Source of the DNA: Octopus sinensis
Lineage: Eukaryota
Direction of reading: 5' to 3'
Length of the DNA stretch: 64,000 bases
Assembly (NCBI RefSeq): GCF_006345805.1
Contig: NW_021833017.1
Location: forward strand, 1 to 64,000
Part shown: positions 32,832-61,199 of the stretch, one piece after another
Numbering within the stretch: position 1 is the stretch's first letter
Layout of the letters: each line of letters opens with the position of its first letter
Notes under the pieces: generated by a model
Database searches by the model: none
What the model was told of the DNA's origin: nothing
What the model saw: the letters and a program-made list of their open reading frames with translations, nothing else
Made by a program: the position numbers and the translations under genes

Positions 32832-32873
<42 letters not shown>

Positions 32874-34862: not shown

Positions 34863-34886
34863 ATCAACAACAACAATAACAATAAC

Positions 34887-34920
<34 letters not shown>

Positions 34921-38232: not shown

Positions 38233-38263
<31 letters not shown>

Positions 38264-38483: not shown

Positions 38484-38539
<56 letters not shown>

Positions 38540-38587
38540 CTGTATGTGTGGGTGAGAGAGAGGAAATACAAATGTACTAATACATGC

Positions 38588-38910: not shown

Positions 38911-39737
38911 CTAAAAATAGGAGAATAAACACACATGCATAAAAACAAAAACCACACTCGTAGCATAACGGGGTCAGTAATTACAGACCCCATTATGTAG
39001 CTACATTTATTACAGCTACATAAATTACAGACCCCATTATGCAGCTAGATTACAGCCACTAATTAGTGGCTGTAATCCAGCTACATAGCTTTATGGATCT
39101 GATTGTTTTTGAACGTAACTCAGAGTTGCATGGTGGTAGATTGCAAACTCAGTAGAGCTCTGTAGAACATGCCTTGTGAGATCTGATTATATCTGTGAAT
39201 GTTCTGACATCAGAACCTATCGGAAGGCTGTTAGCTTTGGTTTCCATTCCAATCAATGAAGCTGATTAAATTTATTAAATTCCTCCCTTATAAATTTAGA
39301 CATTGTACCTAATTGTAATGGTAAGGACAATGACAAGCGACGATACAGCCAGATAGTTTCACAGTGACCCTTAATAAACACATAGGAACACTAGTGATAC
39401 TTTCATACCAATTTATTCATATACACACACACACACACACAACTATCCGTGCACACAGTTGTTCTGACACACACACACACATCCATATATATATATGCTG
39501 TAGTCTTTTACACACTCATCAACTTATTTATGCACAACTTTACTCATCTTACATATCCTCCACATGTCTACCAAAACATAACTCCAAACACCCACACACA
39601 CACACACACATTTCAACATTCCTTCGTTTGATATGATCATATAACTGAGTGTAATTAAATATCCACCCCAAAACAACCTCACACACCCAATGTCATCACC
39701 TCTACAAAAACTGGACATCTTATGGAAAATTTCATAC

Positions 39738-39950
39738 CTTCACTAGAAGTATCAACAGATGCAACCAAACGCAGAACCTGAAAATACTCAAAAATTGGGG
39801 TTCGTTTTTCATTGGATATATCAAAAATCCAAATGTTATGTTTTGCCCTTGTAAGTGCTGTGTATAAATACTTTAATTCAGAGTTGAGAACCTTGTGCTT
39901 GTTTGGGTCAAAGGTTAAAGGATGAGGATGGTTCTCGGAATCAAGAACAT
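39738..39950 (-). CDS. TRANK1: TRANK1-like exon with helicase motif VI (ELKYLYTALTRAK)
   Basis: 213 nt, phase 1-1, ttgcag/gtatga. Confidence 0.94.
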
Positions 39951-41888
39951 CTGCAAAGGAAAAAGAACAAAACAATATTAGTTATTTTTATTGTAGAGTA
40001 GACCTGTTGTGTGGCATGTCTTTCTAATTGTTTAAATTTCATATCATTCTATTTGGGAGAAGCTTGTTTGTCCATATTTCACATTGAAGTTCTTTGATCT
40101 TGTTCTTACTCAAATGTATTTTACCAATTTTTATACAAAGTGGTAAAACAAAGACACAATGCCTCAGAATTTTTGGTAAAAGTAGAGAGTATTTAACTGA
40201 CCCTAATATTTGACTGGTACTTGTTTTATTGACCGTAAAAGGACGATTGGCAAAGTTGACCCAGCAGGAACAATATTTCTGTGATTCAAATAAAATATTT
40301 CTCAACCAAACTATCTATCAATCACTCCACCCTGCTATCATTCAATCAATCGATCTCTCTATCAGCTAATTGATCTATCTGTTGATTGATCTGTCTATCT
40401 ATATTTCTTTCTTTCTTATCTTTTCTCTCACTCACTCAATCCATCCAGCTAATCATTTATTTCTGTCAAGTCCGGCATCTTTCTACAAATCCATTGAGCG
40501 ATTCATCTGTCACTCCGTCCACCTACCTTTCAATTTATTATGTACCAATCTAGTTGTCTAAAAACACATTTCTGGTTTGTTTGTCTGAGACCCCATGCTA
40601 ACACTGGCTACAGAAAGGGGTTTTATGGACTCCAGTTCCTCGTGGGATGACTTCCACACTAAAGATGAGAATGCATTCGTCCTTTCTGTGCAATCTTGCA
40701 TATAAACCTAGCTGGATTGATTTGGTTAAGATAGCGTTCATGTTGCTTAGCCCTGGGTCAGTCCTGATCAAGCAAATGTTCAATCCATGATAATCTTGCC
40801 CTTTTATATATTCTGGATAGACAATGAAGGGTTTATATTTCGAATATAGATTTTCCATTTTTAAAACAGAAGGGAGTGACTGGTGAGAGATTTGCTTATT
40901 TGTAGCAGATCAAGGCATCACCCAGAACCCATCACAACCCCTTTAGCTCATAGAAACCATTGCCATAACAGTTCGTAGAAAGAGTGAAGAAGGTCATGGA
41001 TGGACACAACTGTTCAATATCACATAAACTTCATCAGGTTTGTGCAGTTAAGATAAGAGGAGCAGAAGCCAAGGTCAAAGGTTGGGGAAATGGAGTAAAG
41101 ACAAAGGGGAAAGAATTGATAGAGAAGCAAAAAGAGTGTGGACAGGACACGAGTGGCAGGCTCCCATGAATATAGAGCTAATAGGGAGATTTATGGAGGG
41201 TGTAGAGTATTCCAGCAGGGCCTTTCGACAGTTATGTCACATGTGAGCAGCAATATGCTGTAGTGTGGTGCATCTGTCCAAGAACAGGCACACATGGAGC
41301 CGTTCGGTGATCTTTTTCTGATTAACAAGGATCTATACAGAGGTCAGTTCCTAATGCTCAATTGAAAAGTTTTGAGTCAGTGGGAGAGAGAGAGAGCAGG
41401 AGGGGACACAAGTCCACCTAAGTTGAGTTTTATACAAAAGGGATGTCATCAAGTTTTAATAGATAAAATAAAAAGAGGCACCGAGAATGAAGTGTATGTC
41501 TTCGGGTCAATTTGAACCCATGACTCTTGGATTGTTAATCTAATATTTCATACATTCCATTCATTCTTTCTCCTCTAAACATTGGTGCTACCATTAAGCA
41601 GCAACAATTTGGAAAGTGGGAAATTTCCGGACACTTAGACTTCCACAACAGTTTTCACAAATTAATAAAAGAAAAAAAAACAAACAATTTAATGTGAAGA
41701 TTAAATGGGGTGGAATTTAACTAGGATTCATAATAAATATATAACTTGGAAAAGAGAAGTCACATTGAATAATGTAGTCTAAGATACACAATGCCTAAGG
41801 GAAAAGGGTACAATTATGGCTGAAATGTCATTGATCTACGAGACCAAGACTAATTCAAAGCTAAGCAACAAGAAAGAATGGGATTCAC

Positions 41889-41994
41889 CGAAGTTGAATT
41901 CAGCTGATCTTTGACCATTTCCTTGGCTGTCTTCATTGGTTTCTGCAATTATTTCCTGCAAATAGCTTGTTATTATTCGCCATTCATCAGTCAC
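41889..41994 (-). CDS. TRANK1: TRANK1-like exon (VTDEWRIITSYL...)
   Basis: 106 nt, phase 0-1, ttacag/gtgaat. Confidence 0.88.
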
Positions 41995-43229
41995 CTGTAA
42001 TTGATAATTTTTCTTAGAAATGACTGATGCATAAATTATAGTAAAAGAGATTTTTTTATCTTTTAACACCAACCGGTTATTTTATTTGATAAAGAACACA
42101 GACACACATCCATGCAGTTTGGCACTGCATCTTTGTCTTCTTTCATCTCCTTCTCAACCACTTCCAGCCGCCACCCTCGGATCTCCTCTCCTCTAGCAAG
42201 ACACCTGTGCTTGTCTTCTATCATACTTTAGCCTTTCAAAACCTGGTATAAAGTCACTCCCAGCCCCACCTAGAAGTTGGAACTTTCCCTTTTCTGGTGG
42301 TATGAAAAGAAACCCCATCCAGTACAGTGCAAAGGGGCTGGTGTTAGGAAGGGCATCCAACCATAAAAACCGTGCCAAAACTGACACTGGAACTCAGTGC
42401 TGGGTCCTGTCCAAAGGTCCAACCTCTGCAAGCATGGAAGGAAGATGTTAAATGGTGACAAGGATGACGACATTCATACATCGTACAACCATGCACGTAT
42501 ACACACGTGTATGCAGCACATTATATATGCATGTGTAGTACATGTGTGTGTGTGTGTGTGTTGGGATGGCAGAGGTCAGTAGCAGCAGCAGGATGTAGGG
42601 TCAGGAGGCTGAGTGATGTGTGGGTGTGTGCATGAGTATGTACAGGTGTATGTGTGTGCACGTGTCCCTTTCTCCAAACATGACAGTTACCCCCTCTCCT
42701 ACTCTCTCTCTCACACACACACACACACAAGCACTGTGGTGTGCCCTTGTGCGCTTTTCCTGTCACTGGCCTAGGCAGATAAAATGCAAGGATCTCCACC
42801 GGTCAAGGTTAATTCTACTTCTACACATGTCTGTAGAGGCCTGGGCAAGATTTTCAAGGAAGACTGACCATTGGCCATACATACAAGTTCTCCCCTCTCT
42901 CCAAGTTACCAATGTTTAATCCAATGGAAAGGTCACTGACTTGGGTCGCATATATTGGGTGGTCAGCATGCACCAAATGGTTGGGTGTACCATTAAGAGG
43001 TCGGTTGTAAGTGGTGGTGGCAATGGCAGTAGTAGCAGCCAGCAGCAGCAGTGTGTGTCCGTGTGTCACCCCCACAATAACCAACAGGGTTGCAGAACTA
43101 CTAAAATACTTTTTTTATCTTTCATGTTGTGTGATGAAGAAATGAAATTTAATAAAGCAATGTGAAGAATGTGTGGCCTTCATGAGAGGCTGGAAGGGAA
43201 ATTAGATTAACATGAAACTGAAACTGTAC

Positions 43230-43367
43230 CAGAGAATCCTTGAAGAAGTTGTACAAAAGGATATCATTGAATTCTAAGCCTTTTGATTCAGCAATTGTGA
43301 GAACAATTGCAGATGAAAGAAAACTGGGTAATTCCTGTTTTGCCTGATTATTTGCCACAAGAATAGC
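43230..43367 (-). CDS. TRANK1: TRANK1-like exon with helicase motif V (TIAESKGLEFNDILLYNFF)
   Basis: 138 nt, phase 0-0, tttcag/gtacag. Confidence 0.93.
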
Positions 43368-44065
43368 CTGAAATAGAAGAGAACAAAACATGAGAGAAAA
43401 GGCAGAGAACAACACGAGAGAGGAAGAAAAAGTAACAAAAAAACAAAAAAACTATCGATATATAACTAGAAATAGTAACAGTACAAAAACAACAACATAA
43501 GCTTAGCTATTGAATCCAGAAGGATTCAATTAAGATTGAATAAAACAAAAGAGATTTTTATGGTTCTTTGCATTATGGTTTGTCTGAGAAAATTCAGAGA
43601 ATCTGAAATACATCAGAATTGGATTCAAAAAGTAGCACTACACTTTGTAGATTCCTTGCCAAAGGAAAATCCATCCAAGAATTATGGGAACATAACAACT
43701 ACATTGATAACATTCCATGCCTTTCTAGAATTCTTATAAAATCAAAAAATTCTTGATTTCATCCAGTTTTGTGTACATCCGATGTAACGATATTTTGCGG
43801 AATCATTTGTCATAATTGTTGCATGATATGCTACATTCTTTCTTTTTAAGAGAAAAACTGTAGTATTCCGGGCACGTGCCTGCTATATCCTAAGAATACA
43901 TGTCTATCCTGAGGATACACATCTTAGAAGAACAGAATGGAGTGAGTGGAACAAGAACACACGAAAATGAAATGTTGCTGAAGAGGTCATAGAGTGCAAC
44001 AAAAACTTTCTGAACAATGGACATGAGTTAAAATAATAAAATAAGAACAGTAATAAACAAGTAAA

Positions 44066-44067
<2 letters not shown>

Positions 44068-44136
<69 letters not shown>

Positions 44137-44150
44137 CATATATATATATA
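44068..44150. repeat. (AT)n microsatellite (representative of many)
   Basis: Direct reading. Confidence 0.95.
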
Positions 44151-45132
44151 GTGCGTGTGTTTATTTGGCAAAAAAAAAAAATTACCATCCCAAAATACAA
44201 TATCTGTTTCAACACCTGATTTCACATCAGGAATCTTGCAAAATGAATTGACATACTAATATGTATGTATGTATGTGTATATATATATGTCAGGTCACTT
44301 TCGAGTGCTGCTGGTAACATGTAACCCAGTACAACCTGTGGCATGGTCGGGTCATCGGCGACTAAACCGGCAACCCCACCAAGCTCGCTTGGTGAGGAGG
44401 CTGTTTATTGGACACCCTGCGGGATGAAAAGCAAAACCCCTCAAAGGGCGGAGGAACTCTTGAGAGTCAACGGCCATCCAATAAATGCGGTTTTTTTTAA
44501 GGCTTAAGGCTGTATCATGCGCGGGGACATAGAAATAATCGGACTGAATACCCGATCGCGCGGTTAAACCATTGGGAGTGAAGGACTCCTAGCCTTTGTT
44601 AAGGCATCCTTCTAGGAGAAGGTAACTCAGGTAACTGGGATAACTCAGTGGTTACCGATGATGTTGACTTGTTCTTCTTTTCAGATTATGGCTGCTGTTG
44701 CTTAGTGAGTGGGATTGACTCAGTGCACAGCCTTTCTTCACTTTAAAAAAAAATCTTCTTGCACAGGCATTGCACGATAACATTGTTCATGATTGTTGAT
44801 AGTGCTGTGAGTCTCAACTGAATGGCTGGTTGTGGCCTTAAAAAGCAAATAAAAGTCACATTCGATCACAGCACCAATAACAGTTAAGCTTCGTGCAATG
44901 GCCATACTCGATAACGAGGGAGCAGCCATCATATATATACATACATATATATATATTTACACATATGTATGTCTGTGTAATGTGAGTGTCTGTCTTCGAG
45001 TGTATGTGTGTATCTGGATCTAAGTACGTATCTATATGCATCTTTATATATCTGTGTGTATATGTATAGATGTGTATATCCACGTGTACCCACATATATG
45101 AGTTCATGTATGTATATGTATGTGTATATATA

Positions 45133-45182
<50 letters not shown>

Positions 45183-46005
45183 TGTATATGTACATGAAAC
45201 TACTTTTAATCTTCCTTTCATTTTCTATTTTCTTTTTCCTCGAAGCAAATATGACAGCAAAAGCTAATTCGGTCATTTTATCCAAACAGGAACACAAGAT
45301 TTCCACGTATATTTCAATTTTTTGCGTTTCTATAATATTATTTGCTTTTATTCATTCTTGAACAATAAGCCAGCCAACACTAAAAAATATCTAGTGGGGC
45401 TTCTTTACCAAAGTACCTGAAGAGACCCAGACTGATTGGTTGAAACATGTCATACTTAATAAAAATATAATATGAAATCCATCTCCTACTATTAATTAAT
45501 ACCATTATCCTAAGTGCCACTGCAAAGTTCCTGAAGTAAATCCAAGGGAGGTGTACCACAACTATGGATGTCAACCTGTAGCCTCAACCGTGCCAGTTCT
45601 CTACTCAGCATTTAAACACACTAATCTAATCATATGTATTTGTCTAAATTTTCTATTATCATATATATATATATATAAACTATTGAAAAGGTTGCAAGAC
45701 ACAACGAAAATTTTAGGAAAATAAAAATAAGAAAAAAGTGGAAATTTTACCAGTGAGTGTGTTACATTATAAGGCACAAAAAGAGAATGACTCTCCCCAG
45801 ACACAACAGAATATGCTTCAGCACACGAACTCATATAAAGAACCTTGCAAACCAAATCCAAAAATGAAATATATATATATATATATATATATATAGTCAT
45901 TACAGATATAGGGTGAAATATAATTAATTTAATAAAATCAACAAATTTCACCTAGTAGTATTTCGGTATGGAAAAGGACCATATTCGGTAAAAATTTATA
46001 TAATT

Positions 46006-46203
46006 ATAATAATAAGAGTTTTTTGCAACAAGTTGCTTAAACCACATACTGAAAATTTTAGAAATAGCAGCTAAAAGACTACTATTCTCCACAGACAACA
46101 ATATTTGTAACTCACATAAGGAAATAGTGGTCTTTTGGCTGCTATTTCTAAAATTTTCAGTATGTGGTTTAAGCAACTTGTTGCAAAAAACCCTTATTAT
46201 TAT
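46006..46203. repeat. Hairpin inverted repeat: 81-bp arms, 36-nt loop
   Basis: 46006-46086 vs 46123-46203, 3 mismatches; ORF track shows the same peptide (AAISKIFSMWFKQLVAKN) on both strands. Confidence 0.92.
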
Positions 46204-46205
46204 AA

Positions 46206-46258
<53 letters not shown>

Positions 46259-47094
46259 CACCCACATACAATGGGATTCTTTCAGTTTCTGTCAACCAAA
46301 TCCACTCACAAGGCTTTTCTTGGCTTGAGGTTGTAGTAGAAGACACTTGCCCAAGGTACCACGCAGTGGGTCTGACCTCAAAACCATGTAGTTAGCAAGC
46401 AAACTTCTTAACCATACAACCACATCTGTGCCTATAGTTAAAGGTGTATATGTGTGTGTGTGTGTAACAGGTAAATTCCACATACACAACAGGTCAGCAT
46501 CACAAGGATGAAGTGTCCCTGGTGAAATACTCAAAACTTACAAGTTTCCTTTTATATATGAAGGAAGAAGAAAGCCAGAAGTGAAGTTCTGGTGAAGTTG
46601 ATGTGCTTCTGATGCTCAGCCTGAAAATCCGTAGGTAAAAACACAGGTGAGCCAAGAGTGGCAGATCTGTTTCAGCGAACAGAGTAAATTCTTGTGAAAT
46701 TAAAATAGCAGCCAACTCTCCCACAAATCTTACCATCTTAAATAAAGGGTACACTGGACAACGTAGTCTCTGCTATACAAAATTATGGGATGGTCACAAG
46801 TGGAATGGCTTTGACCAACAGTGTGCTGAAACAGGGCTAGTTTGGGGCTCAACAACAACTCTGCTAAAACAAAGGCTGACCATGGACAAAGTGATGGCAT
46901 TAAAACGGGTGCCATGTTATGTTTACCAATCAAGAAATAGAGGGAAAAAAATGGTCCATAATAACTAGGTTGTTTCATATGAAATGTTGCATTTTTAATT
47001 ACTTGTTATTTCAATCATTTAAAAACTCAATTATTTACACCTTAATTATTTACACCTTGTATTTAATCTTGACTCTTACTCCTTCCCAATAATA

Positions 47095-48029
47095 TTAGTA
47101 TACAAAATTCGTACCCACAGACCTTATGAAAATGATAACCAAACTATGTTGAGTGATTTTCTCATAGAGCACAAACTGGGTCACTCTACTGCAGAAGTTC
47201 TACGGAATATCAAGTGGGGCCATCAAAACTGTTCAGAGATGGTTCCAAAGCTCGCGTTCAGGAGATGATAGCCTTGAAAATAAACCAAGGGGTAGGCCAA
47301 AATCAGTTATTCGGCATGATGGTTTGTTCCACATGAACTGAATGAGATTCAAAAAAAAGACGCCTCGAAGAGTGCTCCTTATTGCTTTCTCAACTGGAAT
47401 AAGACCATTTTAGCATTACTTGTGATGAGAAATGGATACTCTTTGACAACAGGAGAGTCACCTAAACATTACCCAAACCCACCACTGCACCCTAAAAAAG
47501 TTAGTGGTCACTGTATGGTGGTCTGCAAAGGGAGTTATTCATTATTCATTTTTGCAACAAGGAAAAACGGTAACAGCAACATCGTATTGCCAGGAAATTG
47601 ATTGTATGCATGAGGATGTGAAAAAGAAGCAACCCAGACAAGTGAATTTGCTCCACGGCAATGTACATGCTGACACTCCTCAAGCTACGGTCCAAAAGTT
47701 GCAAAGCCTGGATTATGAGATTTTGCAACATCCTCCCTAATCCCCTGATATCTCTCCTACTGATCATCACTTATTTAAGCATTTTGAGCTTTTCATAAGT
47801 AATAAAACATTCTTAAACAGAGAAGAGGTAATTGAAGCATTCGGGCAGTTTATCACAGCAAAAAATGAATTTTTTTTTTAAAGATGAAATACATGACATA
47901 GAGAAACGTTGGGTAAGCATCACAAATGAACATGGATCGTACTTTGATTAAATAAATCAGTTCTCTAACACTTCTGAAACATTTTATTGTTACCTTTCAA
48001 ATACAAAATTTCATGTGAAACAACCGAAT
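47095..48029 (+). mobile_element. Decayed mariner (cecropia/Hsmar1-like) transposase pseudogene
   Basis: TCDEKWILFDN, VTVWWSAKGVIHYSFL and HPP*SPDISPTDHHLF motifs; right TIR-like end at about 48010-48029. Confidence 0.85.
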
Positions 48030-48097
48030 GTTATTGTGGCACTGGTACTAAAGAGGTTCTCTTATGTTTTCGACAAACTCAAACATGTCATACATAC

Positions 48098-48254
48098 CTG
48101 CTGGGCTCCAAATTCTATCTGATTTGATCTCTGTTTTTCTCCTCCCAATAACATGATCAAGTTCTCGTTGTTACAGAACTCAAAGATTTTTGGTTTTGGG
48201 CCCTCATATGACCCAAAATCTTTCTCGGTTTTATCAAAAGATTCCGGGAAATAT
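48098..48254 (-). CDS. TRANK1: TRANK1-like exon (YFPESFD...IEFGAQQ), absent from the ORF track
   Basis: 157 nt, phase 2-0, ttatag/gtatgt; joins ...LLNR to AILV in frame. Confidence 0.92.
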
Positions 48255-48766
48255 CTATAAGAAGGATATCAAACATTGTGAGCGGTAAAAATAGTGTAAA
48301 AGGAAAGAGTGTTGTAAGGAGAACGCAAGAGGTTGTAACATGAGCAACAAGTATGTAACATAAGTGCTGTCACTGTGTGACATGAGTGTCATGGAAGGGA
48401 TGCAGATATAGGATATGCATGTTTGTATGTGCAAGTGTCAATGTCGAATAAAAAATTAACAGTAATAACACTTGCAAGTCACTTAAGTTAGGCTGCGTGG
48501 CATGAGTGCAACTTCAATGTGACAGGAGGATTGTGAGAGTGTAACACGGATGATCTGAGGATGTAACATGACATGAAAACAACAGGAGCTTGCTATGAAA
48601 GCAACTGGAGTGTAACAGGAGTGCAAAGGAGTTTCAACACATCACGAGAACATCATCATCATCGTCATCATAGCTTTAACATATACTTTTCCATCCTTCC
48701 AAGGGGCAGACAGAATTTAAGGTAGCAACATTTAATATTAAACAAAGAAAACAAAAGGCCACATAC

Positions 48767-49194
48767 CTGTTAAGTAAATCAAGAACACTAGAAGCCAATG
48801 AAACCACCCCACTGTGTGACCTGTAGTTGCAGGTCAAATAATGCATTGTCTGGGGTACGTTAATAGAGTGGAGTTGCTTTAAATTTGAACATATCCCTTT
48901 TAGGTAATAAAAGAGTGACTTGAGGTCACAGAATCGAAATGCAACACCTCTCATGATACTCTGGGCTGTGTCACCTGTGAGAAACATGTTGTTGGGATTT
49001 TCAACAAGTAATATCATCAGAAAGAGTTCAGCTTGGGTAAAATCCTGGACTTCATCGACATAAATCTCATGAATGGGGCAGAAGGTTGGTTGGGAATTAC
49101 GAAGCCGAGAGAATAAATTAAAAACAACATCCATCTCATCAAACAGATGTCTTTCTCTTAAGAGTTTATTGTATTTCACAAATGCTTGGTATAC
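48767..49194 (-). CDS. TRANK1: TRANK1-like exon with helicase motifs II (YVDEVQD), III (LTGDTAQSI) and IV (LTCNYRSH)
   Basis: 428 nt, phase 0-2, ttgcag/gtatgt. Confidence 0.95.
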
Positions 49195-50857
49195 CTGCAA
49201 ATAAAAAAAAAACAACATAAAAACAATATATTTTATCACAAAATTAGACACAATTTTGCGATAAAAAAAAGAACAGACACATCAGCAGGACTTGAAACTA
49301 GTATTTGTTGTTTGTTGGGTGGTCCCAGGACTAGTTGCACCACAGACAGCTTGCCATTACCCATTCTTAAATAACATAAATACGTTTTTTTTCCTTTGCT
49401 AATTTTAATTGATTCTTTTATTTCCACACAATAATTTTCCTATCACTTTGTGTGAGCAGAATAGCTTATTTCTCCTAATGTCTAATGTAACAAAGTATTC
49501 TAGTTTGCTAACAAAATACATCAAGGAAAATTCTTAATATATATATATCCCTTGCTTAAATAAATTTCATCATCATTGTCGTTTTAATGTCCACTTTTTT
49601 CATGCATGCATTGGTCAGACAGAATCTTCTGAGACAGATTTTCTACAACAAAAGGCCCTCCCTGTTGCAAACCCTCACTTGTTCCAAGTAAGGTAATATC
49701 TTCCCATATATACACACATTTTTCATGGAAGATGAGAAATGAACAACTTCACTTTTATGACAACAATAAGGCTCATTTACAACCATTATGTGATGCCCCA
49801 ACAAGGATGGATACACACACACACACACATACGCATGCTCACACGCACACACACGAGGCTTTTCCAGTTTCCAACTATCAAATCCAATCACAAGGTGCAG
49901 CAAAGTGGGACTGAACATAAGACTACAAGGTTGGGAAGCAAGCTTCTTAACCACACAGCTACACCAGCACCAGTGTGTGTGTGTGTGCGCACATGTGTGC
50001 CATGTAAAACCCACTCTGCGGGGTGGTTGGTGCTAGGAAGGGCACCCAGCCATAAAAACCCTGCCAAAACAGACACAGCAGCCTGAAGTAGTCTTCTACC
50101 TGGCCGACTCCTGTCAACCATCCTACCCATGCATGCGTGAAAGATGGACGTTAATCAGTGATGCTTGCTAGGTAGGTATCATCAATTAACACCCTTGTCC
50201 CATGCTGACATGGGTTGGATGGTTTGACAAAGGCAGATGGGTTGAAGGACTGCATTGAGCGTGAGTGTTTTGGCAACGGTTTCTATGGCTGGCTGCCCTT
50301 CCTAATACCAACCATTCTACAGTGTACTGGATGCTTTACTCGTGTCACCAGTACAAGTAAGATTATCGTGCAGTTTGCAAGATTACAAACCCCAAATGAG
50401 GGCACTTTATGCTACTGTGGCAAAATGGATTTGAAAATGAATGAATATATAGAGATAGCCAGTGGGATGTAAGCTCTGGTATGGCCTCCCAGCCTGGACA
50501 GGTTATAGGAGAGATGCCAAAGATGAACAACTTCTTTGCAGTTTAAAAAATGAGTTTATGTGGAGCCAACATATCTACCTAGAAGAAAGCAAAGTTAGAG
50601 AAAATTTGCCTGACCCATGCTTGCATAGAAAAGTGGACATTAAGACAATAATAATGATGATCACACACACATATATATGTACACACACATATATATGTAC
50701 ACACACACACACACATAATATTGAACAGTGAGAATGAGTGCTGAACACCACATTGGTGAATATTCTTTAGTTGTGGAATAAGAAGACTACTGTTGGTTTC
50801 CTGTGGAGAATTCTCAACAATTATAAAGCCTGCCACATTGGATGCATTTTATATATA

Positions 50858-51366
50858 TACTAGCAGTATCGCCCGGCATTGCTCGGGTTTGTAAGGGAAA
50901 TAACTATATAAGCATTTTTAGAGAGTTACTTCCCTTATAAATTCGGGCTTTCTTAGCCATTTTTGTTTTGGTGTCTTCAAGCCATGAAGTCGTTGTTCTA
51001 AAAGAACGCTGGTTTCCTTCACAACGCATTACGACGTTGATTTCTTTACACTCCCTTCCCCACAGCTTCACGAGGGAGGGAAGGGGGAGAAGCAAACAGG
51101 TGCAGCTGTGAGCGTGGACGCCAACTCCGCCGCCATCGACATACGATGCATTTTATGCATTAAAATGGAATAAAAAATGATGTTAAATTATTTTTAAAAT
51201 CGTAGACTCATCGTTGACGCGCGCTAATAGTCAGACGGGCTCGATATGAATCACGACTATAAGATACCCGAATTTGGTTAAACTGCACCGCAAAATGTGG
51301 GAGGAGTTAGGAATCTAAATCGAAAGGGACAGACACTCACACAACTAGAGTTTTATATATATAGAT
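50858..51366 (+). mobile_element. Non-autonomous Helitron-derived (Lep1-like) element
   Basis: 5' TACTAGCAGTATCGCCCGGCATTGCTCGGG hairpin; 3' ACAGAC/ACAAC...TTTTATATATATAGAT; retains many CpGs. Confidence 0.65.
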
Positions 51367-51385
51367 ATATATATATATATATATA

Positions 51386-52669
51386 CGAGGGACGTTTGAT
51401 AAGTAATGCCCCTGACCCACTTGCAGTTGCTTGATCTAGCTGAAATTTTGCAAGTGCAATCATTTATATCTCTATAGAGTAAGTGCCAAATTACAGCTCT
51501 GAACTAATTGTGGTTTCTGATTTACAGGTATTTGAACTGAGTCAAGTGTGAAATGGAGCCTGTTGAGTGTCGAGCAGTGATTCGGTTTTTGTATTTGAAA
51601 GGACGCACACCACGGGAGACTTTTGATGAAATGAAAGTAACTTATGGTGATGATGCCCCATCATATGACCTTGTAAAACGCTGGCATCGTGAATTCAAAC
51701 ATGGTCGGAACTCTGTGGAAACAGCTCCCAGATCTGGTCGCCCCCCTTCTGCCATTGATGAGGCATCTGTCCGTCAAGTTGAGGCTGCCATTTTGGAAGA
51801 TCGACGCATAATTATTCGCCAAATAGCCCATGAGGTCAAGATTAGTACCGGGTCTGTGGAAACTAGCATTCATGACCATTTGCATATGTAAAAGGTGTCT
51901 GCCAGATGGATTCCCAGGTTGCTCATGCCTTTCCAGAAGCAAGAACGCGTCGAGTGCTTGAGGATGAATTTGGAGATGTGCCAAGAAGATGAGTCAAAAT
52001 TTTTCAAAAGACTGATTACACAGGATGAAACCTGGGTCCATCACGATGATCCAGAGACCAAAGCCCAGTCAATGCAATGGAAGCACCATGACTCCAAAGA
52101 AGGCAAGGGTGCAGCCCTCCGCTGGCAAGGTCATGCTCACAGTCTTCTGGGACCAGGACGGAGTAGTGATGACAGATTTCCTGGCAAATGGTGCCACAAT
52201 TACAGGAGCCTATTATACTTCACTTTTGAGGAAATTAAGAGAAGTTATCAAAATCAAGAGGCGGGGCAAGATCAGCAAAGGCATCCTCCTCCTGCAGGAC
52301 AACGCTCCGGTCCACAACTCGCTTGTCGCCAGATCAGAAGCACAGGCATATGGCTATGAACTCCTCCCCCACTCCCCTACTTTCCTGACCTTGCACCCTC
52401 TGATTTTCCCCTCTTCCCAGTCATGAAGTTGTTTTTGAAAGGAAAGCGTTTCCCAAATGATGCAGCCTTGATTTCTGAAGTCACGTTCAGGTTGGAGGAC
52501 CAAGCTGGGGTCTTCTACAAAAACGGTCTCCAGAGCTGCATCAAACGATGGGAGAAATGCGTAACTCTGGGTGATTCCTATGTAGAAAAAGACTAATAAC
52601 TGTGCCAAGTTCCGTTGCTCTACTGCTATGGGAAGTGGGTCAGGGGCATTACTTATTGAACGCCCCTCG
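51386..52669 (+). mobile_element. Full-length (1284 bp) mariner, irritans-subfamily-like DD34D; transposase disabled
   Basis: TA TSDs (51384-5, 52670-1); 37-bp TIRs with 3 mismatches; ATG 51553, in-frame TAA 51889-91, later frameshifts; QDETW, QDNA and PDLAPSDF motifs; stop 52594-6. Confidence 0.95.
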
Positions 52670-52672
52670 TAT

Positions 52673-52918
52673 AAACAAAAGACGAAGACAGGTGTATGAA
52701 CAACAAGTAAGTGTATTAGTTTGATGCTCAGGAAAAATGAAAAAGTCTTTTATATTTCGAGCCTATGCACTTCAGCAGAAAGGAATAAGACAAAATAAAC
52801 AGAGAGAGAATGAGAAAAACTTGTAGATTTCAGCAAGCCAACAAAATTTTTCATTTTTCCCAAGCACCAAACTAATACACTTGCTTGTTATTCATACACC
52901 TGTCTTCACCTTTTGTTT
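52673..52918. repeat. Inverted repeat element: about 72-bp arms, 7 mismatches
   Basis: 52673-52744 vs 52847-52918; abuts the mariner right TSD. Confidence 0.85.
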
Positions 52919-53210
52919 TTCTATAAATTTCAACTATATACACCCACACATATATATATATATCAATGCTAAAAAATGTCTGCTTTAGAGAGGAAGTGAA
53001 GAATATCTTCAAAGTGTTGCAACGGAGAAATTTATGTTGGGATATTTAAGTAAACACCACAAACAATATTGGAGATCAACCCAAATAAACATAGACAATA
53101 CACCCGTAATTCATCCAAGCAAAATATTTAATCACTGAGTGTGCAGCAACCAATAGGTAACTGTTGGTGTGAATATAGACATCAGAAGAAAAAAATTCCA
53201 ATTTACAAAC

Positions 53211-53836
53211 CTTTTCCCGGTCTGAGGTGAAATTTGGCGCCTGTTTCTTCCCAATCTCCAAGTATTCATTTTTTGATAGGAAACCTTTCTCTGAAAGCAG
53301 GGATTTATAAGAGCCTTTTATGATTGACATAATTTCAGTCCAAATAAGGGTTGGATGGCAGCCAGGGACTGGATATTTAATTCGATTCCAAAATTCCTTC
53401 TCAAATATGTCATAGGTTACTTCATAAAAATCTTGGAAATTCCCACCAACGTCGTTCTCTTTGATGTCCATGTCAAACAGATTGCTGGAATCTTCATCCA
53501 GCCAGTTTTTGAAGTCTGTTCTCAAAGTCATGTCTTCATTTCGAGGGAAAAAATACGGTGAACCAAGTGAGGCATCTAAAAGAACCCAAAATTTCTTGGA
53601 TGTTAGAAATATTGGGAAATTGTTGTCCTGAAGATCCTGAAAACGTAACCCAGAAAATTCCATGTGGTTTTCACTCATATTCTCACCAGTACAGAGATTT
53701 TTGAAGTTCTTTTGCATTTCTGTACACAGACAATTGTTTCGTGAAATAAACAGTTGATGAAGATGGCAGTAGTTTTCGGAATCATCTTTGCTTTCATCGT
53801 CATCTGAATCATTCACATCGTCTTCATCTTGTTCTT
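53211..53836 (-). CDS. TRANK1: TRANK1-like exon (acidic tract, HQLFISRN motif Ia region, WTEIMSIIKGS)
   Basis: 626 nt, phase 1-0, tatcag/gtttgt boundaries; inside ORF 53076-53816. Confidence 0.92.
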
Positions 53837-54675
53837 CTGATAGAAGAGGAAATAAAAGCAGAATTGTTACAGTTCTTTTGCAAAAAGAAAAAAAAAATTT
53901 TTTAACAGATATGTTTGTGTGGTTAAGAAGCTCATTTTGTAACCGCTTGGTTCCAGGTTCAATCTAACTACACAGCACCTTGGGCAAGCGTCTTCTGCTT
54001 TGGCTCCGGCCAACCACTGTTTTGTGAGTGAATTGAGTGACCTAGGTAGAGGGAACTGTATGTGTGTGTCTTCAACTGTCACTTGATAACCAGTGTTGGT
54101 TTGTTGACATCCTCATTACTTAGCAAGTTGGAAAAAGAGACCAATAGAATAAGTACCAGACAGAAAAAAAAAAAAGAATCACTGGGGTCAGTTTGTTCGA
54201 TTAAGACCCTTGAAGGTGATGCCCCAGCATAACTGCAGTTTAATGATTAAAATATACTAAAAAGACCACAACCATCTTTTGGCCTCATATTCAACTCTGG
54301 CTGCCATAAAATAAAATGAGAGATAAGTCATTCAGTGGATCAGATGCCAGTTTATCACAAACTAGCTTTGCCTGAAAATTCTGTTGTACTCACTTCCTTA
54401 CATAACTAGGCAATCCCATGAGCCAATGAGGGAGCTTCTACATGGGAAGTCAACCTATTAGAACTAGCAGCCAAAACTTCTCTAGAACCAAAATGTGCCA
54501 TCTTAAAAAAAAATGGAATATTGGTTGGTTAATTTAGCCCAGGGTATACAATCTATGAAATCATATGGTGTGAAGGTCACAACTGGAATCATTTTTATCA
54601 TAAGTATTGCTCAATCCAATCAGGCAACAACAAGTAGTCTCCATCAACATTGAAAAGACTTCAATATGCATGGTG

Positions 54676-54725
<50 letters not shown>

Positions 54726-54728
<3 letters not shown>

Positions 54729-54924
54729 CATATAAAATACCATATACATTAAAACACATTAAGAGGCTTCCATCATAGGAATGCCTTGCGCTAGAAAGAA
54801 CAGTTAAAGTCCAAGCCACAAATTAGGGATAAATTCTGGACTTTAACTGTTCTTTCTAGCGTAAGGCATTCCTATGTTGGAAGCCTCTTAATGTGTTTTA
54901 ATGTACACAGTATTTTATATGAAT
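54726..54924. repeat. Hairpin inverted repeat: 88-bp arms, 23-nt loop
   Basis: 54726-54813 vs 54837-54924, near-perfect core. Confidence 0.9.
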
Positions 54925-56347
54925 AATATCTAGTCTATTATCTAAATTTTTTGCGCTAGACTACTGGTAGTAAAAATTTCTATAATTTTTATTACCCTGA
55001 TATTATTTATTTATTATGTATATATATGTGTGTGTGTGTGCATAAACTCTTCTCTATAGCAGAAGACTGAGTTCAACTCACTGTCATGCTAATTATTAGA
55101 CCATCTTGAAATCCTATCATTGATAGATTAGCATCATATCTAACAAATCAGTGAAAGAAATAGTATTCGTCTGATGTGTAGAAGCCAGAACCAAACACTG
55201 GATATTTCAGAGAGAAACTAAAGAAATTTGCATTTTTACAAAGATCCACAAAAGTTACAGACAAGAAAAGGCATATTTTTCCTTCTACGACTGGAAATTG
55301 GAATTATAAGTTGATAAAATGAAATGTTTTCTTAGAGTGAAACTGTGTGAATTTAGAGATAATGACACTGTGCATGTGCTGTGTGTGCACACATGAAAAT
55401 TTATTTGGTGCAGCCTGTCTCTCCTCCAGAATATTCACTGCAGCAAAACTTCAAAGGAATCGAGCATCATCTCAGTTGCAGCAAGAGACTGGATTGGTTC
55501 TGCTGGCTGAGCTCAACAAGAACTTAACTTATCACCACTGTGCAGCACTAACAACTGCACACCAGGTAGAGATTGCTTAAATAAGAGAATGGACATGCAA
55601 GTAGACATAACTGTGGCTGAGAAGCTCATGGTTTCAGGTTCAGTCCCACTGTGTGGCACCTTCTACTATAGCCCTGGGCCAACCAATGCCTTGCAAGAAA
55701 ATTTTGTAGACGGAAACCGTGTAGAAGCTCATCATATATAGGTATATGCATGTGTGTCTTTGTATTTGTGTTTAACCCCCACTACTGTTTGATAACCAGT
55801 GTTGGTTTAGTTAGTTAGTTAGTTAGCTAATTTGGCTCAAAAGCAAATAGCAAGGCCATGTAGGGGGAAATGGAGTTAAGTACAGGGTGGTGTTCATGTA
55901 AAGAGTTCAGGCCACTTGAGGTCCAGGGAGGCTTTGAACAAAGCGGTCGTCGGCATCTTTACCATCTCGTCTGGCAGCTTGTTCCACGGTTTGTTTACAT
56001 TCCTTTAATCTATTGGCTCAGCAAAAGAGACCAACAGAATAAGTACTACCAGACTTAAAAATAAGCAGTGGGGATGATTTGTTTCATTAAGCCCTTCAAT
56101 GTAGTGCTCCAGCATGGCCTCAGTAAGCAAAAAAGTAAAAGGTAATGCTCAATAAGAACTGATCAATTCTCACCAAGCTACAAGCACTGATGTCTACCAC
56201 ATGAGGCCCAGGGCTATAGTAGAAGACACTTACCCGAGGTGCCACACAGTGGGACTGAGCCTGAATCCATGAGCTTCTTTCTCAGCCACAAATGAATTCA
56301 AAACTGATTTTAATAAAATGAAGAATAACCAAATGAAAGAGTCTCAC

Positions 56348-56926
56348 CATCTGATTGTTCTTGCAGGTGTCCTCCTAGCACTTTGTTATCTCTGATGTGA
56401 TCCAATGAGTTAGTCACAAGTTTCTGAAACAATGGGCTCCCAGAGATGTTAGCCTGTTTCCAATAGGTGATATAATGGTCCCAGAGTCGGTAAAGACAGC
56501 AAGTGGTTTTGCCAGTACCACTTCGGCCCAACACAATGATGGCTTCTTTACTGTTGTCGACTATGATGTTAGATTCCGCTTCTTTTACTTCAAACGGGAA
56601 AGAAGCATTCAACGTACTCTCCTGAAATATATATCTTACCAATGAAGAGGTAAAACGGTAGAATTTCATAATATTCACTTCACTTTCACTGTTAATAGAA
56701 AGATATGAGTGACAGATGTCGTTGCCTTTATTGTCGTCACACTTGTCAAAGACACGTGGTGACAATACACCAGACAGACTCTGGGTAGAGAGTACAGGTT
56801 TTAAATACTGACAACAGGGTAAACTAGCCTTGTAACATCTCACAATATTGTCTATAATGGATCTGAACTTGTTTAAATTAAAAACCACTTTCCAGATACA
56901 AAGCACCTCTGAATATTGTTCCAGTT
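56348..56926 (-). CDS. TRANK1: TRANK1-like exon with helicase Walker A (GRSGTGKT, 56505-56528)
   Basis: 579 nt, phase 1-1, ag/gtgaga; IIVLGRSGTGKTTCCLYRLW matches the TRANK1/LBA1 signature. Confidence 0.93.
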
Positions 56927-59742
56927 CTAAAAAAACAAAACAAAAAAAAAACAAGAGATAATATATAGATATAAATACATATATATACGTATAAATTCAT
57001 AGAATCATGTGGCTAAGACATAAAGCTCTTCTAGCAGACTCAGCTAACTGACCACAAAGTAATCCAATACCAGAAGATTGCAAAACAACTGTAATTCACC
57101 TCACATACCTCTTGACATTTTATGGTTTACAGACACACGCATGCATACAAAAATATATAGACATACACACACACACACACACACACATGCATATACTCTA
57201 AGACTGATATATAAATAGATTGATATACAAATAGACAGACAAACTGATAGATGGATAAAACATGCCCCACTTCCTAGCACCACATTATGAGTAGCCTTAG
57301 CAGCATAACAGAGTAAGATGAGTGACAAAGAGCAGAGTCACTCTGAATTCCATTTTGCATGAAGGAAATACTGAACAGGAAAGTAGAAACTCTGAATGAA
57401 ATTCTGGTGTTGATGTAGACTCCAGAAGCCACAGTGAAGGAATGGATGTGGGGATGTTATCATGTAGGAACTTGAAATGAAAAACACTAATTAGTGGTCA
57501 TGTGACTTCTGAATAAGAGCTCTACAGACTCAGAAAGACAAAGATAGAAGGTATAGAAGTTGGAAGATCCCTTTACTGGAAACAGGTTTACAGAAATAGA
57601 AGGTGACGTGTATGGCAAGGAGGACACAGAGACATGTGGCATTGCAGGTAACTGAGAGTTGTTATGCAATAACCTGTTTGGAATTGTTGACCAAATCTGT
57701 GGATGGAGCAAGGTTCCAGCCAGATAGCAGATAACAGGATGGTAAAAAGCTCTAGAATACAGAGTGTTGTAATACCTAAGAGGAAGATTTGGGAAATAGG
57801 GATGAAAATGGAGAGAAAACAACAACATCATGAAGGTAAAAAACAAGCAAAGTGTCAGGTGTATATAGTAAAGAGAGGAGAGAAAAGTAAAGGGTTTGTT
57901 AATATTGTGCAATGAGAGAATTGAAAGTGTGAGGTGCTTTGGATTACAAAACAGTCAGGATGAGTCAGGATTATCATTGGTGAAAAATTTATACAGAAAG
58001 ATACATTTGCAACCACTGATGCTGAGAAGAAAGATGCTTGGAGATGTATGTTAAGAGCTTTTGAGCAAGAAGAATGCATGGGAGAAAGAGAGAGACTTCT
58101 GAAAAGAGCTGAAAGAGACGACCATATGCTGGACGTTGATAGCTAAACAATCAAAGAATATCTGAGGATATGAAGCACAAGTGTAAATACAAGTGGCGAA
58201 AATGGGGATTCTTCTGAAGGATTATTGAAGGAACATTACTTGACAGGGTTTGCAGCTTGGAGATAAGTGAGTCTCTCCAGGTCAAGCAACTGTTTGTATA
58301 CCCCAGGGATTAAAATGCTCCAGAAAAGAATTATAGGAGAGATTCTTTAAGCTGAGACAATGGTCAGAAGATGCAGGTGTAAAGGTAGACCAACAATGAG
58401 ATAACTGTAATCCGTAGTCTCGGTTGGTTGTGCAAAGAATCCAGCCAGAAAGTGTAATGATGGTTGCTTCAAACAAAACCATATAGAGTAAGTGCCTGAG
58501 GAGTTTACCATTAGCAAGCTTCGGAGGGAGAAGGTGGATGAATAAAAGGGAAGTGGCTGGACCCTCATGGATAATGAATGAAATGCTGAAGTAGGTAATG
58601 ACATTATTCACATAGTCAGACAGGATGTCCAAGGAACTGTCATAGCCAATGCCCGGCAGGAACATCAGTTGCCACAAAATAGAAGCAAATACTCTGAAAA
58701 GAAGCAACTGCAGAGATATATGAAGCTGATGGATAAAATTATGAAAGAAACTGCCAAGGTGATAGAAACATTCATTAAAAGAAGTACTAACTGAGATTAA
58801 GATGCAGTTTGTGTTTGTAGCAGATCAGACTCCAACCAATGCCTTCTTTCTAGTAGCAAAACAACTGCAGGAAAAAGTTCTGAACGAAAAATTATCCACA
58901 ATAACTAACAATTGTTACCTGGAGAAGACCTGTGATAATAACAAAGTCTATTCTTTCAATTTCTCAGATGCTCCCTGAGAAGCAGTTGACAGATTCCATT
59001 CAGTAGAGGTGGCAAGATGGTAGAATTGTTAGCAGACAAAATGCTTAGTGGCATTTCCTGTGACTCTTTGCATTCTGAATTCAAATTCTACCAAGATCAA
59101 CTTTCCAATATTCTGTGAAAACACACATCTGGCCATGGAGTAATATTACCCTGCATGGAAACAGGTTGCTAACAGGAAAGGCATCTGGTTGTTGTAAATC
59201 TGCTTCAATAAACCACATCTGACCCATGAAGGGATGGAAAACTGGACGTCAAATAAAGGTGATCTGAACCTCAACAACAACAACAACTACAATCAGGTTT
59301 TCAGAGAAATTTTTTGTTTTGCTTTCTTTTTTATTTTATTTTAAACCTTTCCAATGTTATTTGAATTAAATATTTCTATCATGGTGTTTTTGTGATTTTA
59401 TTCTTCTTCTACAACCTTTGTTTATCATTTTCGAAATCTGAATAAATTCTAACTCTTTTCAGATGTATGAAAATGGCATGCCAAAAAACAAAAACAAAAA
59501 TGAATTTATCTGCCAACCAAATATTTGACGGAGATGACCAGCCGACCACCTGCTATTTCATTTCCCATGTAGAATATTTTAAGTTAACTCCAAGTACTAA
59601 CACTATGGTCAGAAAAGAATTTCAATTCAACTGATGGTCACTGGCTGAACATTTTGAAATTTCAGCCACTTTTATGAGTTAATAATTAAAAATAAATCAA
59701 AAAGAAATTTTAAAAAACATGCAAACAGGTAAATCTTCCTAC

Positions 59743-60642
59743 CTGGCAGATAATTAATAGTCAATTGCCAAATGATGCGTGAATTATGTGACAGGTGAAA
59801 TGTGTACAGTTTTAGACTGTTGGGAATATCTTTCAGTTTCCTCACACATCTACTCTTGTAGCCAGAAGCTAACTTTTTGATGGCTAAAACAGTTTGTCTG
59901 CGTGTTTTATCTGTTAAGTCTCTGCTCTTTAAAGTATTCCAAACATCTTGTGTACATATGACTTTCCAATTCAAATTTTCAAATAAATTTTCTTTGAACA
60001 AATCTTCATTTTTATTGTTGTCATCATCATCATCAGCATCATCTTCGTCATCATCATCATCCTTCTCAGAGTCTGTCTGTTCACAGTCTTTAATTACATC
60101 TGCATTGAAATCCATACATATGTCAACTTTTATATCTTGCTCTGTAATTCTTTCAGAAACAGTTTCTCTTCTCTCTTTGATTATCGTGTTAGATGAATTC
60201 ATTTCTTCAAATTTATATTCAGTTAAAGATTCTATTTTAGCCTTCATTTCACTTTCCAAACTTTCTGGAACAGATTTCAAAGAATTGCTTTCCTGATTTT
60301 TTGCCTTCTTTGACTGTGTTTCAATCTCTGAAATTTCAGGCTGACAGTTAACTGAATGACTTTTCGTTATTTCTTCAAAAGCCTCTGGTTTAGAATTTGA
60401 AATTTTGGAATTTTTCTTTTGACACTTTTGCTTCTTGACTTTTTCTGTTGTTGGTAAAATATCTGGCAATAAATTCAGAGCTTTCAATTGTTCAATTAAT
60501 GTTGATGTAACAGAATTGTTCAGAAACTCTTCACATGGTTGATATTTGCCATTTTTCTCAATGAAACATGAATCTAAACAACTGTACTTCTCTTTGTCAG
60601 ACTCATAAAGTTTCAGAAGTGCATTAACAATATCAGAGTAAC
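59743..60642 (-). CDS. TRANK1: TRANK1-like exon (first identified in window): end of an ankyrin-like repeat, low-complexity/acidic linker, start of RelE-like segment
   Basis: tattttag acceptor (60643-4), gtagga donor (59741-2); 900 nt, phase 1-1, open frame (G)YSDIVNALLK...WQLTINYLP. Confidence 0.85.
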
Positions 60643-61199
60643 CTAAAATAAAACAAAGATATCATTAAATCAAAGACAAAAGTTTATTTTTTATGGTTTT
60701 TGGAATAATTAGTATTACAATTTAGTAATTCTACCTGTTGTTAACCATGTAACCCGATCAAATTTGAACTCATGATCAAGGTTTGAATTTATGACTATTT
60801 CATCAGTAATCTAGAAACTTATCTTCGTAAATATTGAATACCACATTCAAATAAACTAGGTTCAAAGACAAAGTTAAAAATTTAGTCCACAGTATTACCG
60901 GTATTCCATGGTGAAAATATTTACTAAATATAAACTATAAACAAAGACTTTCTTTCTAACCACTTCGAGAAAGACCAAATGGATGGACCCTGATGAAACT
61001 GCACTGACAATATTGCAAGGTCGCATTTGCAATAGTGAGGGAACTGCAGCAGCGGAAACACGTGTAGGTCATTGTAATATGTTGTATGTAACCATAAAAT
61101 AAATTTCATGGATGTACAAGTCTCCATACTCTTCTTCTCATTATTAATATTAATGGATACACCAGACAATTTACCATCCAGTGAAGAGTACTTGGAATT

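Follow-up and report, generated by a model that had tools for sequence, protein, structure and literature searches.

Fusions of a RelE-like domain to a defence helicase are already known from bacteria. In ArmD of the ARMADA type II system of Escherichia coli (WP_000218177.1), a RelE-like domain is fused to a GajB-like helicase with Walker A lysine K266, and the authors' HHpred comparison with RelE3 gave an expectation value (E) of 0.0085 (bioRxiv 10.1101/2025.09.15.676423). The system is also treated in an mBio paper (PMC13463889). An immune sensor with RelE as its output is likewise known, in Cami1. Here we describe a domain of about 110 residues, with a predicted RelE/ParE-superfamily fold, that lies directly upstream of a superfamily 1 (SF1) helicase in a TRANK1-like protein of Octopus sinensis. 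The gene is on the minus strand of the window, which is the whole stretch of 64,000 nucleotides (nt) that we analyzed (assembly GCF_006345805.1, contig NW_021833017.1, positions 1 to 64,000). In the parts of the literature that were accessible, TRANK1 features in vertebrate interferon- and virus-response expression studies and in papers on the genetics of bipolar disorder. We found no molecular mechanism for it in the open literature, and a literature search of incomplete coverage returned no link of TRANK1 to UvrD, toxin-antitoxin systems, RelE plus helicase, or prokaryotic helicase domains.

We modelled the octopus domain with AlphaFold2 using an alignment of 60 domain-bearing relatives (A1) and assigned secondary structure with DSSP. 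Two further alignments, A5 (33 eukaryote rows) and A4 (39 eukaryote and cyanobacterial rows, six of them cyanobacterial), were used to examine conservation. The model had a predicted local distance difference test (pLDDT) of 94.5 and a predicted template modelling score (pTM) of 0.86. Its strands (E) and helices (H) ran E9-12, H14-21, H27-41, E49-51, E62-67, E70-81, E86-97, and H100-117, which is the N-terminal strand, two helices, and three- or four-stranded antiparallel sheet of the RelE/ParE fold and agrees with the element order that the first-pass annotation had guessed by eye. In a Foldseek search of the Protein Data Bank (PDB), ranks 1-27 were all toxins of the RelE/ParE superfamily except for an insecticidal toxin chain at rank 16. 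These matches included YoeB from three species, Agrobacterium YoeB/ParE, Thermus RelE, Mycobacterium tuberculosis RelK, YafQ, and Helicobacter pylori HP0894 and HP0892. The Foldseek probability was 0.98-1.00 for the top 26, 0.63 for rank 27, and no more than 0.13 for ranks 28-31, and the target-normalised template modelling score (TM) was 0.51-0.77 over the top 27. A model of the corresponding domain from Callorhinchus (shark) TRANK1 (pLDDT 90.4, with low confidence confined to an inserted loop) recovered the same families in its top 27, again with one insecticidal toxin chain. The two predictions support a RelE/ParE-superfamily fold for the domain, with YoeB, RelE, and YafQ as its closest known structures. 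The earlier claim of such a fold directly upstream of the SF1 helicase stands, because the predicted structure is a RelE-like alpha/beta fold.

The domain is encoded in two exons of the TRANK1-like gene, whose parts are as follows.

59743..59989, minus strand: exon A portion, model residues 1-82 of the RelE-like domain (translation; AlphaFold2 and DSSP)
56927..59742, minus strand: domain-splitting intron, GT-AG, phase 1; the Octopus bimaculoides protein has the identical junction
56820..56926, minus strand: exon B portion, residues 83-118 of the RelE-like domain (translation; AlphaFold2 and DSSP)
59777..59779, minus strand: codon of Arg71 in RIIW, a column invariant in alignments A4 and A5
56871..56879, minus strand: codons of N99-L100-N101, in place of the family D-H-D (alignment and translation)
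56529..56819, minus strand: linker of about 97 residues from the domain to the helicase P-loop (translation)
56505..56528, minus strand: Walker A motif GRSGTGKT of the SF1 (UvrD/GajB-like) helicase (translation, Pfam, PADLOC)
39739..56926, minus strand: helicase exons 56926-56343, 53774-53208, 49197-48703 (DEVQD), 48256-48083, 43370-43209, 41994-41890, and 39951-39739 (YTALTRAK), from tblastn with the O. bimaculoides protein
20008..38911, minus strand: C-terminal alpha-helical region resembling tetratricopeptide repeats (TPR), five exons, 38911-38594, 33490-33326, 27568-27341, 25674-25258, and 22317-20008 (tblastn)
59990..60661, minus strand: Lys/Glu/Asp-rich low-complexity N-terminal region in the same open frame as the domain

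The peptide given in the first-pass annotation is the exact minus-strand translation of 60661-59743 joined to 56926 onward, and its domain portion was reproduced exactly from 59989-59743 plus 56926-56820. Exon A ends in ...RIIWQLTINYLP with its final base at 59743, exon B begins (E)LEQYSEVLCIWKVV... with its first base at 56926, and the spliced domain peptide reads ...NWKVICTQDVWNTLKSRDLTDKTRRQTVLAIKKLASGYKSRCVRKLKDIPNSLKLYTFHLSHNSRIIWQLTINYLP up to the exon junction and ELEQYSEVLCIWKVV... after it. The intron between them is 2816 nt long, has GT and AG ends, and splits codon E83 between strands 3 and 4, a position at which many relatives carry a loop insertion of 10-25 residues. Strand 1 (KVIC), a short strand (VRK), strand 2 (YTFHLS), strand 3 (SRIIWQLTINYL), and helices 1 and 2 are encoded in exon A. 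Strand 4 (QYSEVLCIWKVV), the tripeptide NLN where the family has DHD, and the C-terminal helix (KFRSIIDNIVRCYKAS) are encoded in exon B. The linker stretch FPFEVKEAESNII immediately precedes the Walker A motif, which begins 216 residues past the modelled start of the domain. In O. bimaculoides the intron at this junction is 4071 nt long, and only its first 66 bases align between the two octopuses (94% identity); identity in the flanking exons is 90-93%.

Assignment of the gene to the TRANK1 family is based on its UvrD-like SF1 helicase core and its large helical-repeat region. The helicase matched Pfam UvrD-helicase (2.5e-11) and UvrD_C (1e-7), and its top PADLOC matches were GajB families (best 1.4e-11). 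The annotated O. bimaculoides protein XP_014769974.1, 'TPR and ankyrin repeat-containing protein 1', aligned by tblastn in 13 collinear minus-strand segments (60328-20008), and the closest relative, 91% identical to the query, represents the cluster containing this protein. The order in the octopus is about 180 low-complexity residues, the RelE-like domain, the linker of about 97 residues, the helicase, and a long helical-repeat region. The sequence had first been read as a TPR/ankyrin sensor followed by a RelE-like effector and a helicase. The helical repeats of that layout are borne out, with the C-terminal region of the orthologue matching a Pfam Clathrin/VPS-type helical repeat. The order is not, since the TPR-like region follows the helicase and the low-complexity region at 59990..60661 holds neither TPR nor ankyrin repeats. 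Nor were ankyrin repeats found by Pfam in the full O. bimaculoides orthologue.

We then asked how widely the domain occurs. When the segment and the helicase together were used as query, exhaustive searching with HMMER returned 3670 relatives, and at least 81 of the best 150 of these carry the RelE-like segment at the same place before the helicase, which shows that the pattern did not arise by chance. The 20 domain carriers whose names were checked include vertebrate TRANK1, molluscs, nemerteans, a crinoid, a chytrid, and Cyanophora. The A1 consensus reads F-D-x-L-x-W-E-V-E-C-T ... L-A-x-G ... L-Y-E-A-K-L-x-K-x-x-R-I-L-W-E ... F-S-P-R ... Y-x-E-V-I-R-V-W-D-I-V-x-D-H-D, and no family in the copy of Pfam that we searched covers it. 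The RelE-like domain is thus a module that the TRANK1 family conserves, in vertebrates too, and is not specific to the octopus; its conservation across TRANK1 orthologues, proposed at the outset as a check, is confirmed. Vertebrate TRANK1 (Callorhinchus, turtle, lamprey) resembles the octopus protein in the position of the domain before the helicase and differs in keeping the Arg and a DH(D/N/K) motif, in a loop insertion of about 20 residues, and in having ankyrin repeats upstream. In Callorhinchus TRANK1 an Ank_2 match (residues 506-612) precedes the domain, whereas the octopus orthologue has no DH(D/N/K) motif, loop insertion, or ankyrin repeats.

Two of the relatives deserve separate mention. 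The chytrid Dinochytrium kinnereticum encodes a protein of 4101 residues with two domain matches (residues 381-471 and 2407-2505) and six matched stretches to the domain-plus-helicase query, which could reflect tandem duplication or a gene model that joins separate genes. On the metagenome scaffold ERZ23497095 of the European Nucleotide Archive, a compact sequence of 12 kb with 35-39% GC, a TRANK1-like protein with a DHD-type RelE-like domain is encoded at 5463-9149. We considered a prokaryotic source for it and set this aside, as the helicase resumes in the next called gene past a 57-nt gap. This gap looks like a short intron and points to a microbial eukaryote as the probable source.

Sequence searches linked the domain to the RelE/ParE clan only through its relatives. 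When the 60 A1 members were scanned individually against Pfam, PHROG, and NCBIfam, the only PHROG family matched by more than two of them was phrog_1213, 'RelE-like toxin' (six members, best E 0.0063). Sub-threshold Pfam matches were to Gp49 (two members, 0.016) and ParE_like (one member, 0.0094), and the NCBIfam scan gave no RelE signal. Alignment of A1 with E. coli RelE by hhalign covered 59 columns in the correct register (pairwise E 0.02). A word-indexed protein search queried with the segment returned a single fragment, and the domain alignment as query returned nothing. A match above a curated RelE/ParE threshold was found neither for the octopus domain nor for its relatives. The profile searches that had been suggested as a check of clan membership therefore gave no direct match for the octopus domain and sub-threshold RelE-clan matches in relatives only. 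The predicted structure and the chain of homology through the relatives together support the RelE assignment of the octopus copy.

The chain of homology extends to bacteria. With a TRANK1-like protein as query, tblastn against plasmids picked out UvrD-type proteins encoded by plasmids of two cyanobacteria, Euhalothece natronophila (WP_146297469.1) and Crinalium epipsammum (WP_015205634.1). The N-terminal 105 residues of these proteins matched the TRANK1-domain profile (24.4 and 14.9 bits), which is an independent test of the domain because both proteins were chosen through their helicases. The only Pfam matches of the cyanobacterial N-terminal region at E < 0.1 were YoeB_toxin (0.0012) and HigB-like_toxin (0.0029), both under the gathering score (YoeB_toxin 19.3 bits against a cut-off of 27). 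A contig scan with the two-sequence cyanobacterial alignment added 23 further cyanobacterial loci for a total of 25; the scan used narrow patterns and returned only cyanobacteria, so the spread it describes covers cyanobacteria alone. All 25 proteins match the A1 profile at residues 5-103. Compared with hhalign, the TRANK1-domain and cyanobacterial-domain profiles aligned over 96 columns (probability 96.9%, E 1.4e-10). The cyanobacterial domain in turn aligned with YoeB over 52 ungapped columns (pairwise E 9e-4), and hhalign of the same domain against single RelE or YafQ sequences was unsuccessful.

The resemblance is not confined to the domain. BLASTP aligned the window helicase with a cyanobacterial protein at E 2e-35, and aligned another TRANK1-like protein collinearly with a cyanobacterial protein through the domain, linker, and Walker A motif (E 4e-7). 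In the two cyanobacterial proteins that were scanned (Euhalothece and Crinalium), the UvrD helicase is followed by C-terminal TPR repeats. The domain-profile and BLASTP alignments and the repeat scan show the whole module to be shared (RelE-like domain, linker, UvrD/GajB-like helicase, and TPR where checked), and as judged from these alignments the domain, linker, and helicase of the octopus protein are homologous to cyanobacterial single-gene proteins. The cyanobacterial proteins are like the octopus protein in this collinear order and in the invariant Arg, and they have the DHD motif of the family, which is absent from the octopus copy. They are unlike TRANK1 in their size (960-1670 residues), in being intronless and bacterial, in lacking ankyrin repeats, and in having a short loop between strands 3 and 4. 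No conserved neighbouring gene was found across the 25 loci, and hence no antitoxin or partner is evident. RelE-like domains fused to SF1 helicases in prokaryotes, which had been mentioned in the first-pass annotation, therefore do exist, both in ArmD (bioRxiv 10.1101/2025.09.15.676423) and in these 25 homologues.

Some of the plasmid loci have neighbours or relatives that we record separately. On the Euhalothece plasmid pEu1, the RelE-like/UvrD/TPR gene is followed at 7021-8913 by a gene encoding a NERD (nuclease-related domain) and a UvrD/Schlafen-group-3-like helicase, a neighbour that is not conserved in the other cyanobacterial loci. The Crinalium plasmid carries DUF262 and DUF3696 genes as a pair at 265-2558, on the opposite strand and about 1.5 kb upstream of its RelE-like/UvrD/TPR gene; this pairing is known from defence islands. 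Large Shigella and E. coli plasmids encode a protein annotated as 'ankyrin repeat domain-containing' or 'UvrD-helicase domain-containing', which matched the TRANK1-like helicase by tblastn at 28-30% identity (E 7e-9 to 8e-7) and whose pairing of ankyrin repeats with a UvrD helicase is reminiscent of TRANK1.

Conservation within the family singles out two residues. Only one column never varies in A4 and A5. It holds the Arg that opens strand 3 (octopus R71, the Arg of RIIW), which aligns with RelE R61 and YoeB R65 and thus upholds the match to R61 that had been suggested. The second is the near-invariant His of the DHD motif just past strand 4, which falls at the YoeB H83 position to within one residue. 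It is present in 85% of the 60 aligned sequences, in 6/6 cyanobacterial rows of A4, and in 25/25 cyanobacterial N-termini. In an antiparallel hairpin, strand 3 begins opposite the point where strand 4 ends, and we therefore infer that Arg and His should be neighbours in canonical members, as in YoeB.

The octopus copy keeps R71 and its hydrophobic core and departs from the family at twelve positions (E9, E11, E63, K65, E75, S81, R83, R92, D95, D99, H100, and D101). A Leu at the DHD-His position is seen only in the three cephalopod sequences, and L100, C92, L81, and T63 are found only in the window, O. bimaculoides, and Argonauta. Past the last strand, where the C-terminal catalytic residues of the toxins lie (YoeB H83/Y84; RelE R81/Y87; YafQ H87), the window has N99-L100-N101 with no evident Tyr or Arg substitute. 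At the RelE K52/K54 positions the window has T63 and H65 and the family consensus has E and K, a tentative placement on a weak alignment. On an equally weak and tentative alignment, YoeB E46 pairs with a Lys in the cyanobacterial proteins, and window R50 stands in the family's conserved Lys column. Equivalents of K52/K54 and R81/Y87 had not been evident at first reading, and by alignment they are indeed absent from the octopus copy. The doubt then expressed about its activity is strengthened, and the 'effector' label becomes questionable for this copy because the conserved His and most of the conserved polar residues have been lost. The domain nevertheless appears to be constrained. The ratio of non-synonymous to synonymous substitution (dN/dS) against O. 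bimaculoides is 0.34 for the domain (8 non-synonymous, 6 synonymous) and 0.54 for the linker, and about 50 consecutive residues spanning strands 2-4 are identical between the two octopuses. As the substitution counts are small, this signal is only suggestive.

Taken together, we think it likely that the octopus domain is a non-catalytic RelE-fold module attached to a GajB-like helicase. In canonical members, the strand 3 Arg and the DHD His would form a putative ribonuclease (RNase) or RNA-binding site coupled to the helicase, because they occupy the positions of YoeB R65 and H83. In the octopus, O. bimaculoides, and Argonauta, the Arg is kept, but substitutions have removed the His together with about ten further conserved polar residues. 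Since these are replaced while the core is kept under constraint, the octopus domain is most likely non-catalytic; it would bind RNA or the ribosome, or serve as a structural or regulatory partner of the helicase, and would not act as a RelE-type nuclease.

Several results weigh against this reading, the first group of them concerning the fold. Single-sequence searches gave neither a Pfam match nor a PDB sequence match for the octopus domain, and when the A1 profile was run against PDB sequences the only matches were to designed helical repeats and a P450, which we regard as noise. The hhalign comparison of A1 with E. coli YoeB was not significant (the 120 YoeB sequences were >82% identical, with an effective number of sequences of 1.4), and every Pfam and PHROG match falls under its curated threshold. 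The Foldseek E-values are modest, with a best of 1.6e-3, at a sequence identity to the PDB matches of 9-16%. On such values the likeness to RelE could have arisen by convergence, or be a product of modelling so small an alpha/beta domain, and this would then be a TRANK1-specific domain unrelated to the toxins. We consider this very improbable, given that two independent models both returned a top 27 made up of the RelE/ParE superfamily except for one chain each, that the recurrent sub-threshold sequence matches were solely to RelE-clan families, and that the register was identical in all alignments.

The remaining points bear on catalysis. The dN/dS estimate is built on 14 substitutions, and the mapping of catalytic residues relies on alignments and strand topology. 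RelE itself catalyses with Lys, Arg, and Tyr and has no catalytic His or Glu, so loss of the His is not proof of inactivity. Around strands 2-3 the octopus copy also has many Lys, Arg, and His residues (H65, H68). It could accordingly be argued that the octopus domain is still an active endoribonuclease effector, released or directed by the helicase, that uses alternative residues (R71, H65/H68, Lys/Arg). The RelE/ParE fold does tolerate alternative active sites, as noted for the BECR fold (PMC3710099), and R71 is kept, the K50 position is still basic (Arg), His65 and His68 flank the strand 2-3 hairpin, and the domain is under constraint. We set aside a His-based site at H65/H68, as these residues are not conserved in Argonauta, which has LCLSEHSR there. 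With twelve family-conserved polar positions replaced, the near-invariant His among them, and no compensating polar motif shared by the three cephalopod sequences, we regard an active octopus nuclease as unlikely.

Non-catalytic function could also be a property of the whole family. In that case the domain would be an adaptor that binds nucleic acid, the ribosome, or protein, the Arg and His would serve binding or interdomain contacts, and the octopus copy would simply be a divergent version. In favour of this, ParE-type members of the same fold are not RNases, the equivalent of YoeB Glu46 is a Lys in the family, and ARMADA is reported to protect by a non-abortive mechanism, a point that also tells against the main reading given above. 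Against this, an Arg and a His at the YoeB R65/H83 positions, kept from cyanobacteria to vertebrates, resemble a conserved catalytic pair, and we judge a family-wide absence of enzymatic function to be somewhat less probable even than an active octopus nuclease. A non-catalytic octopus copy of a family whose canonical members carry a putative Arg/His site is thus the reading that we retain.

A broader and more speculative proposal is that the TRANK1 family is the eukaryotic descendant of a bacterial single-protein defence gene combining a RelE/YoeB-like RNase, a GajB/UvrD-like helicase, and TPR repeats. Canonical TRANK1 proteins would then be helicase-gated Arg/His RNases, and cephalopods would have kept a nuclease-disabled paralogue as a sensor, decoy, or regulator. 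We offer this tentatively and think it less likely than not. If it is true, the descent would extend to human TRANK1, which is interferon-induced and associated with bipolar disorder. The core of TRANK1, with a predicted RelE/YoeB-fold domain, a GajB-like helicase, and TPR repeats, is laid out like a validated component of phage defence. This makes TRANK1 a further candidate for an immune module common to bacteria and animals and provides a testable hypothesis in which a nucleic-acid-sensing helicase is coupled to an RNA-directed output through two named residues, Arg and His. The octopus gene itself would be a divergent member of the family whose RelE-fold domain is probably without catalysis.

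The window contains a number of other elements. One intron holds the remnant of a mariner/Mos1-type transposon in two frames (51541-52423, plus strand; HTH_48 1.1e-9 and a partial DDE Transposase_1 1.7e-18). Another holds retroelement-like open frames (28200-31650, minus strand) of higher GC content (0.46-0.48), with an RNase H-like RVT_3 match at 28887-29264 (4.2e-7) and a YIDDILV reverse-transcriptase-like motif at 29378-29620. Just downstream of the last exon, a 203-residue open frame with a PHD finger (17831-18439, minus strand; 5.6e-5) may be a repeat element or a separate gene. An open frame with a DEK C-terminal domain (2644-3024, plus strand; 4.4e-8), on the strand opposite to the TRANK1-like gene, is probably an exon of a neighbouring gene. 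Upstream of exon A, an open frame at 62303-62626 (minus strand) looks by eye like the DNA-binding region of a pogo/Tigger-type transposase and had no Pfam match at E 0.001. Long (CA)n and (TA)n microsatellites (e.g. 57150-57190, 23700-23860, and many others) give rise to spurious His-Thr or Tyr-Ile open frames, and one microsatellite sits within the domain-splitting intron.

Compared with the free-standing toxins YoeB, RelE, and YafQ (Pfam YoeB_toxin, PF06769, and ParE_toxin, PF05016), the octopus domain shares the predicted fold, the strand order, and the strand 3 Arg. YoeB H83 is paralleled by the His past strand 4 in canonical TRANK1-family members and not in the octopus copy, and YoeB E46 and Y84 have no evident equivalents here. 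The toxins have 84-95 residues, are paired with antitoxins, and act at the ribosome. The octopus domain differs in lying inside a protein of about 2100 residues, in an extra C-terminal helix of 18 residues, and in having no evident antitoxin; fused within a multi-exon animal gene, it lacks the adjacent cognate antitoxin of a type II toxin-antitoxin module. Cami1, a CARF-RelE fusion of type III CRISPR systems (PDB 8phj), offers an earlier example of an immune protein in which a sensor domain has a RelE fold as its output, with the difference that the sensing is done by a CARF domain, which binds cyclic oligoadenylate, and not by a helicase. It was among the weaker Foldseek matches of the Callorhinchus model (rank 34, probability 0.35). 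As for ArmD, which we compared through its published description, it is encoded in an operon with ArmA, ArmB, and ArmC, and no TPR region is described in the ARMADA papers, whereas a TRANK1-like protein is a single, very large eukaryotic polypeptide that bears TPR or ankyrin regions. The octopus protein nevertheless has the layout of ArmD, an N-terminal RelE-like domain followed by a GajB-like UvrD helicase. The Walker A lysine is similarly spaced in the two (K266 in ArmD and about residue 222 from the start of the octopus domain), and in ArmD, as in the octopus domain, the RelE assignment is borderline by sequence.

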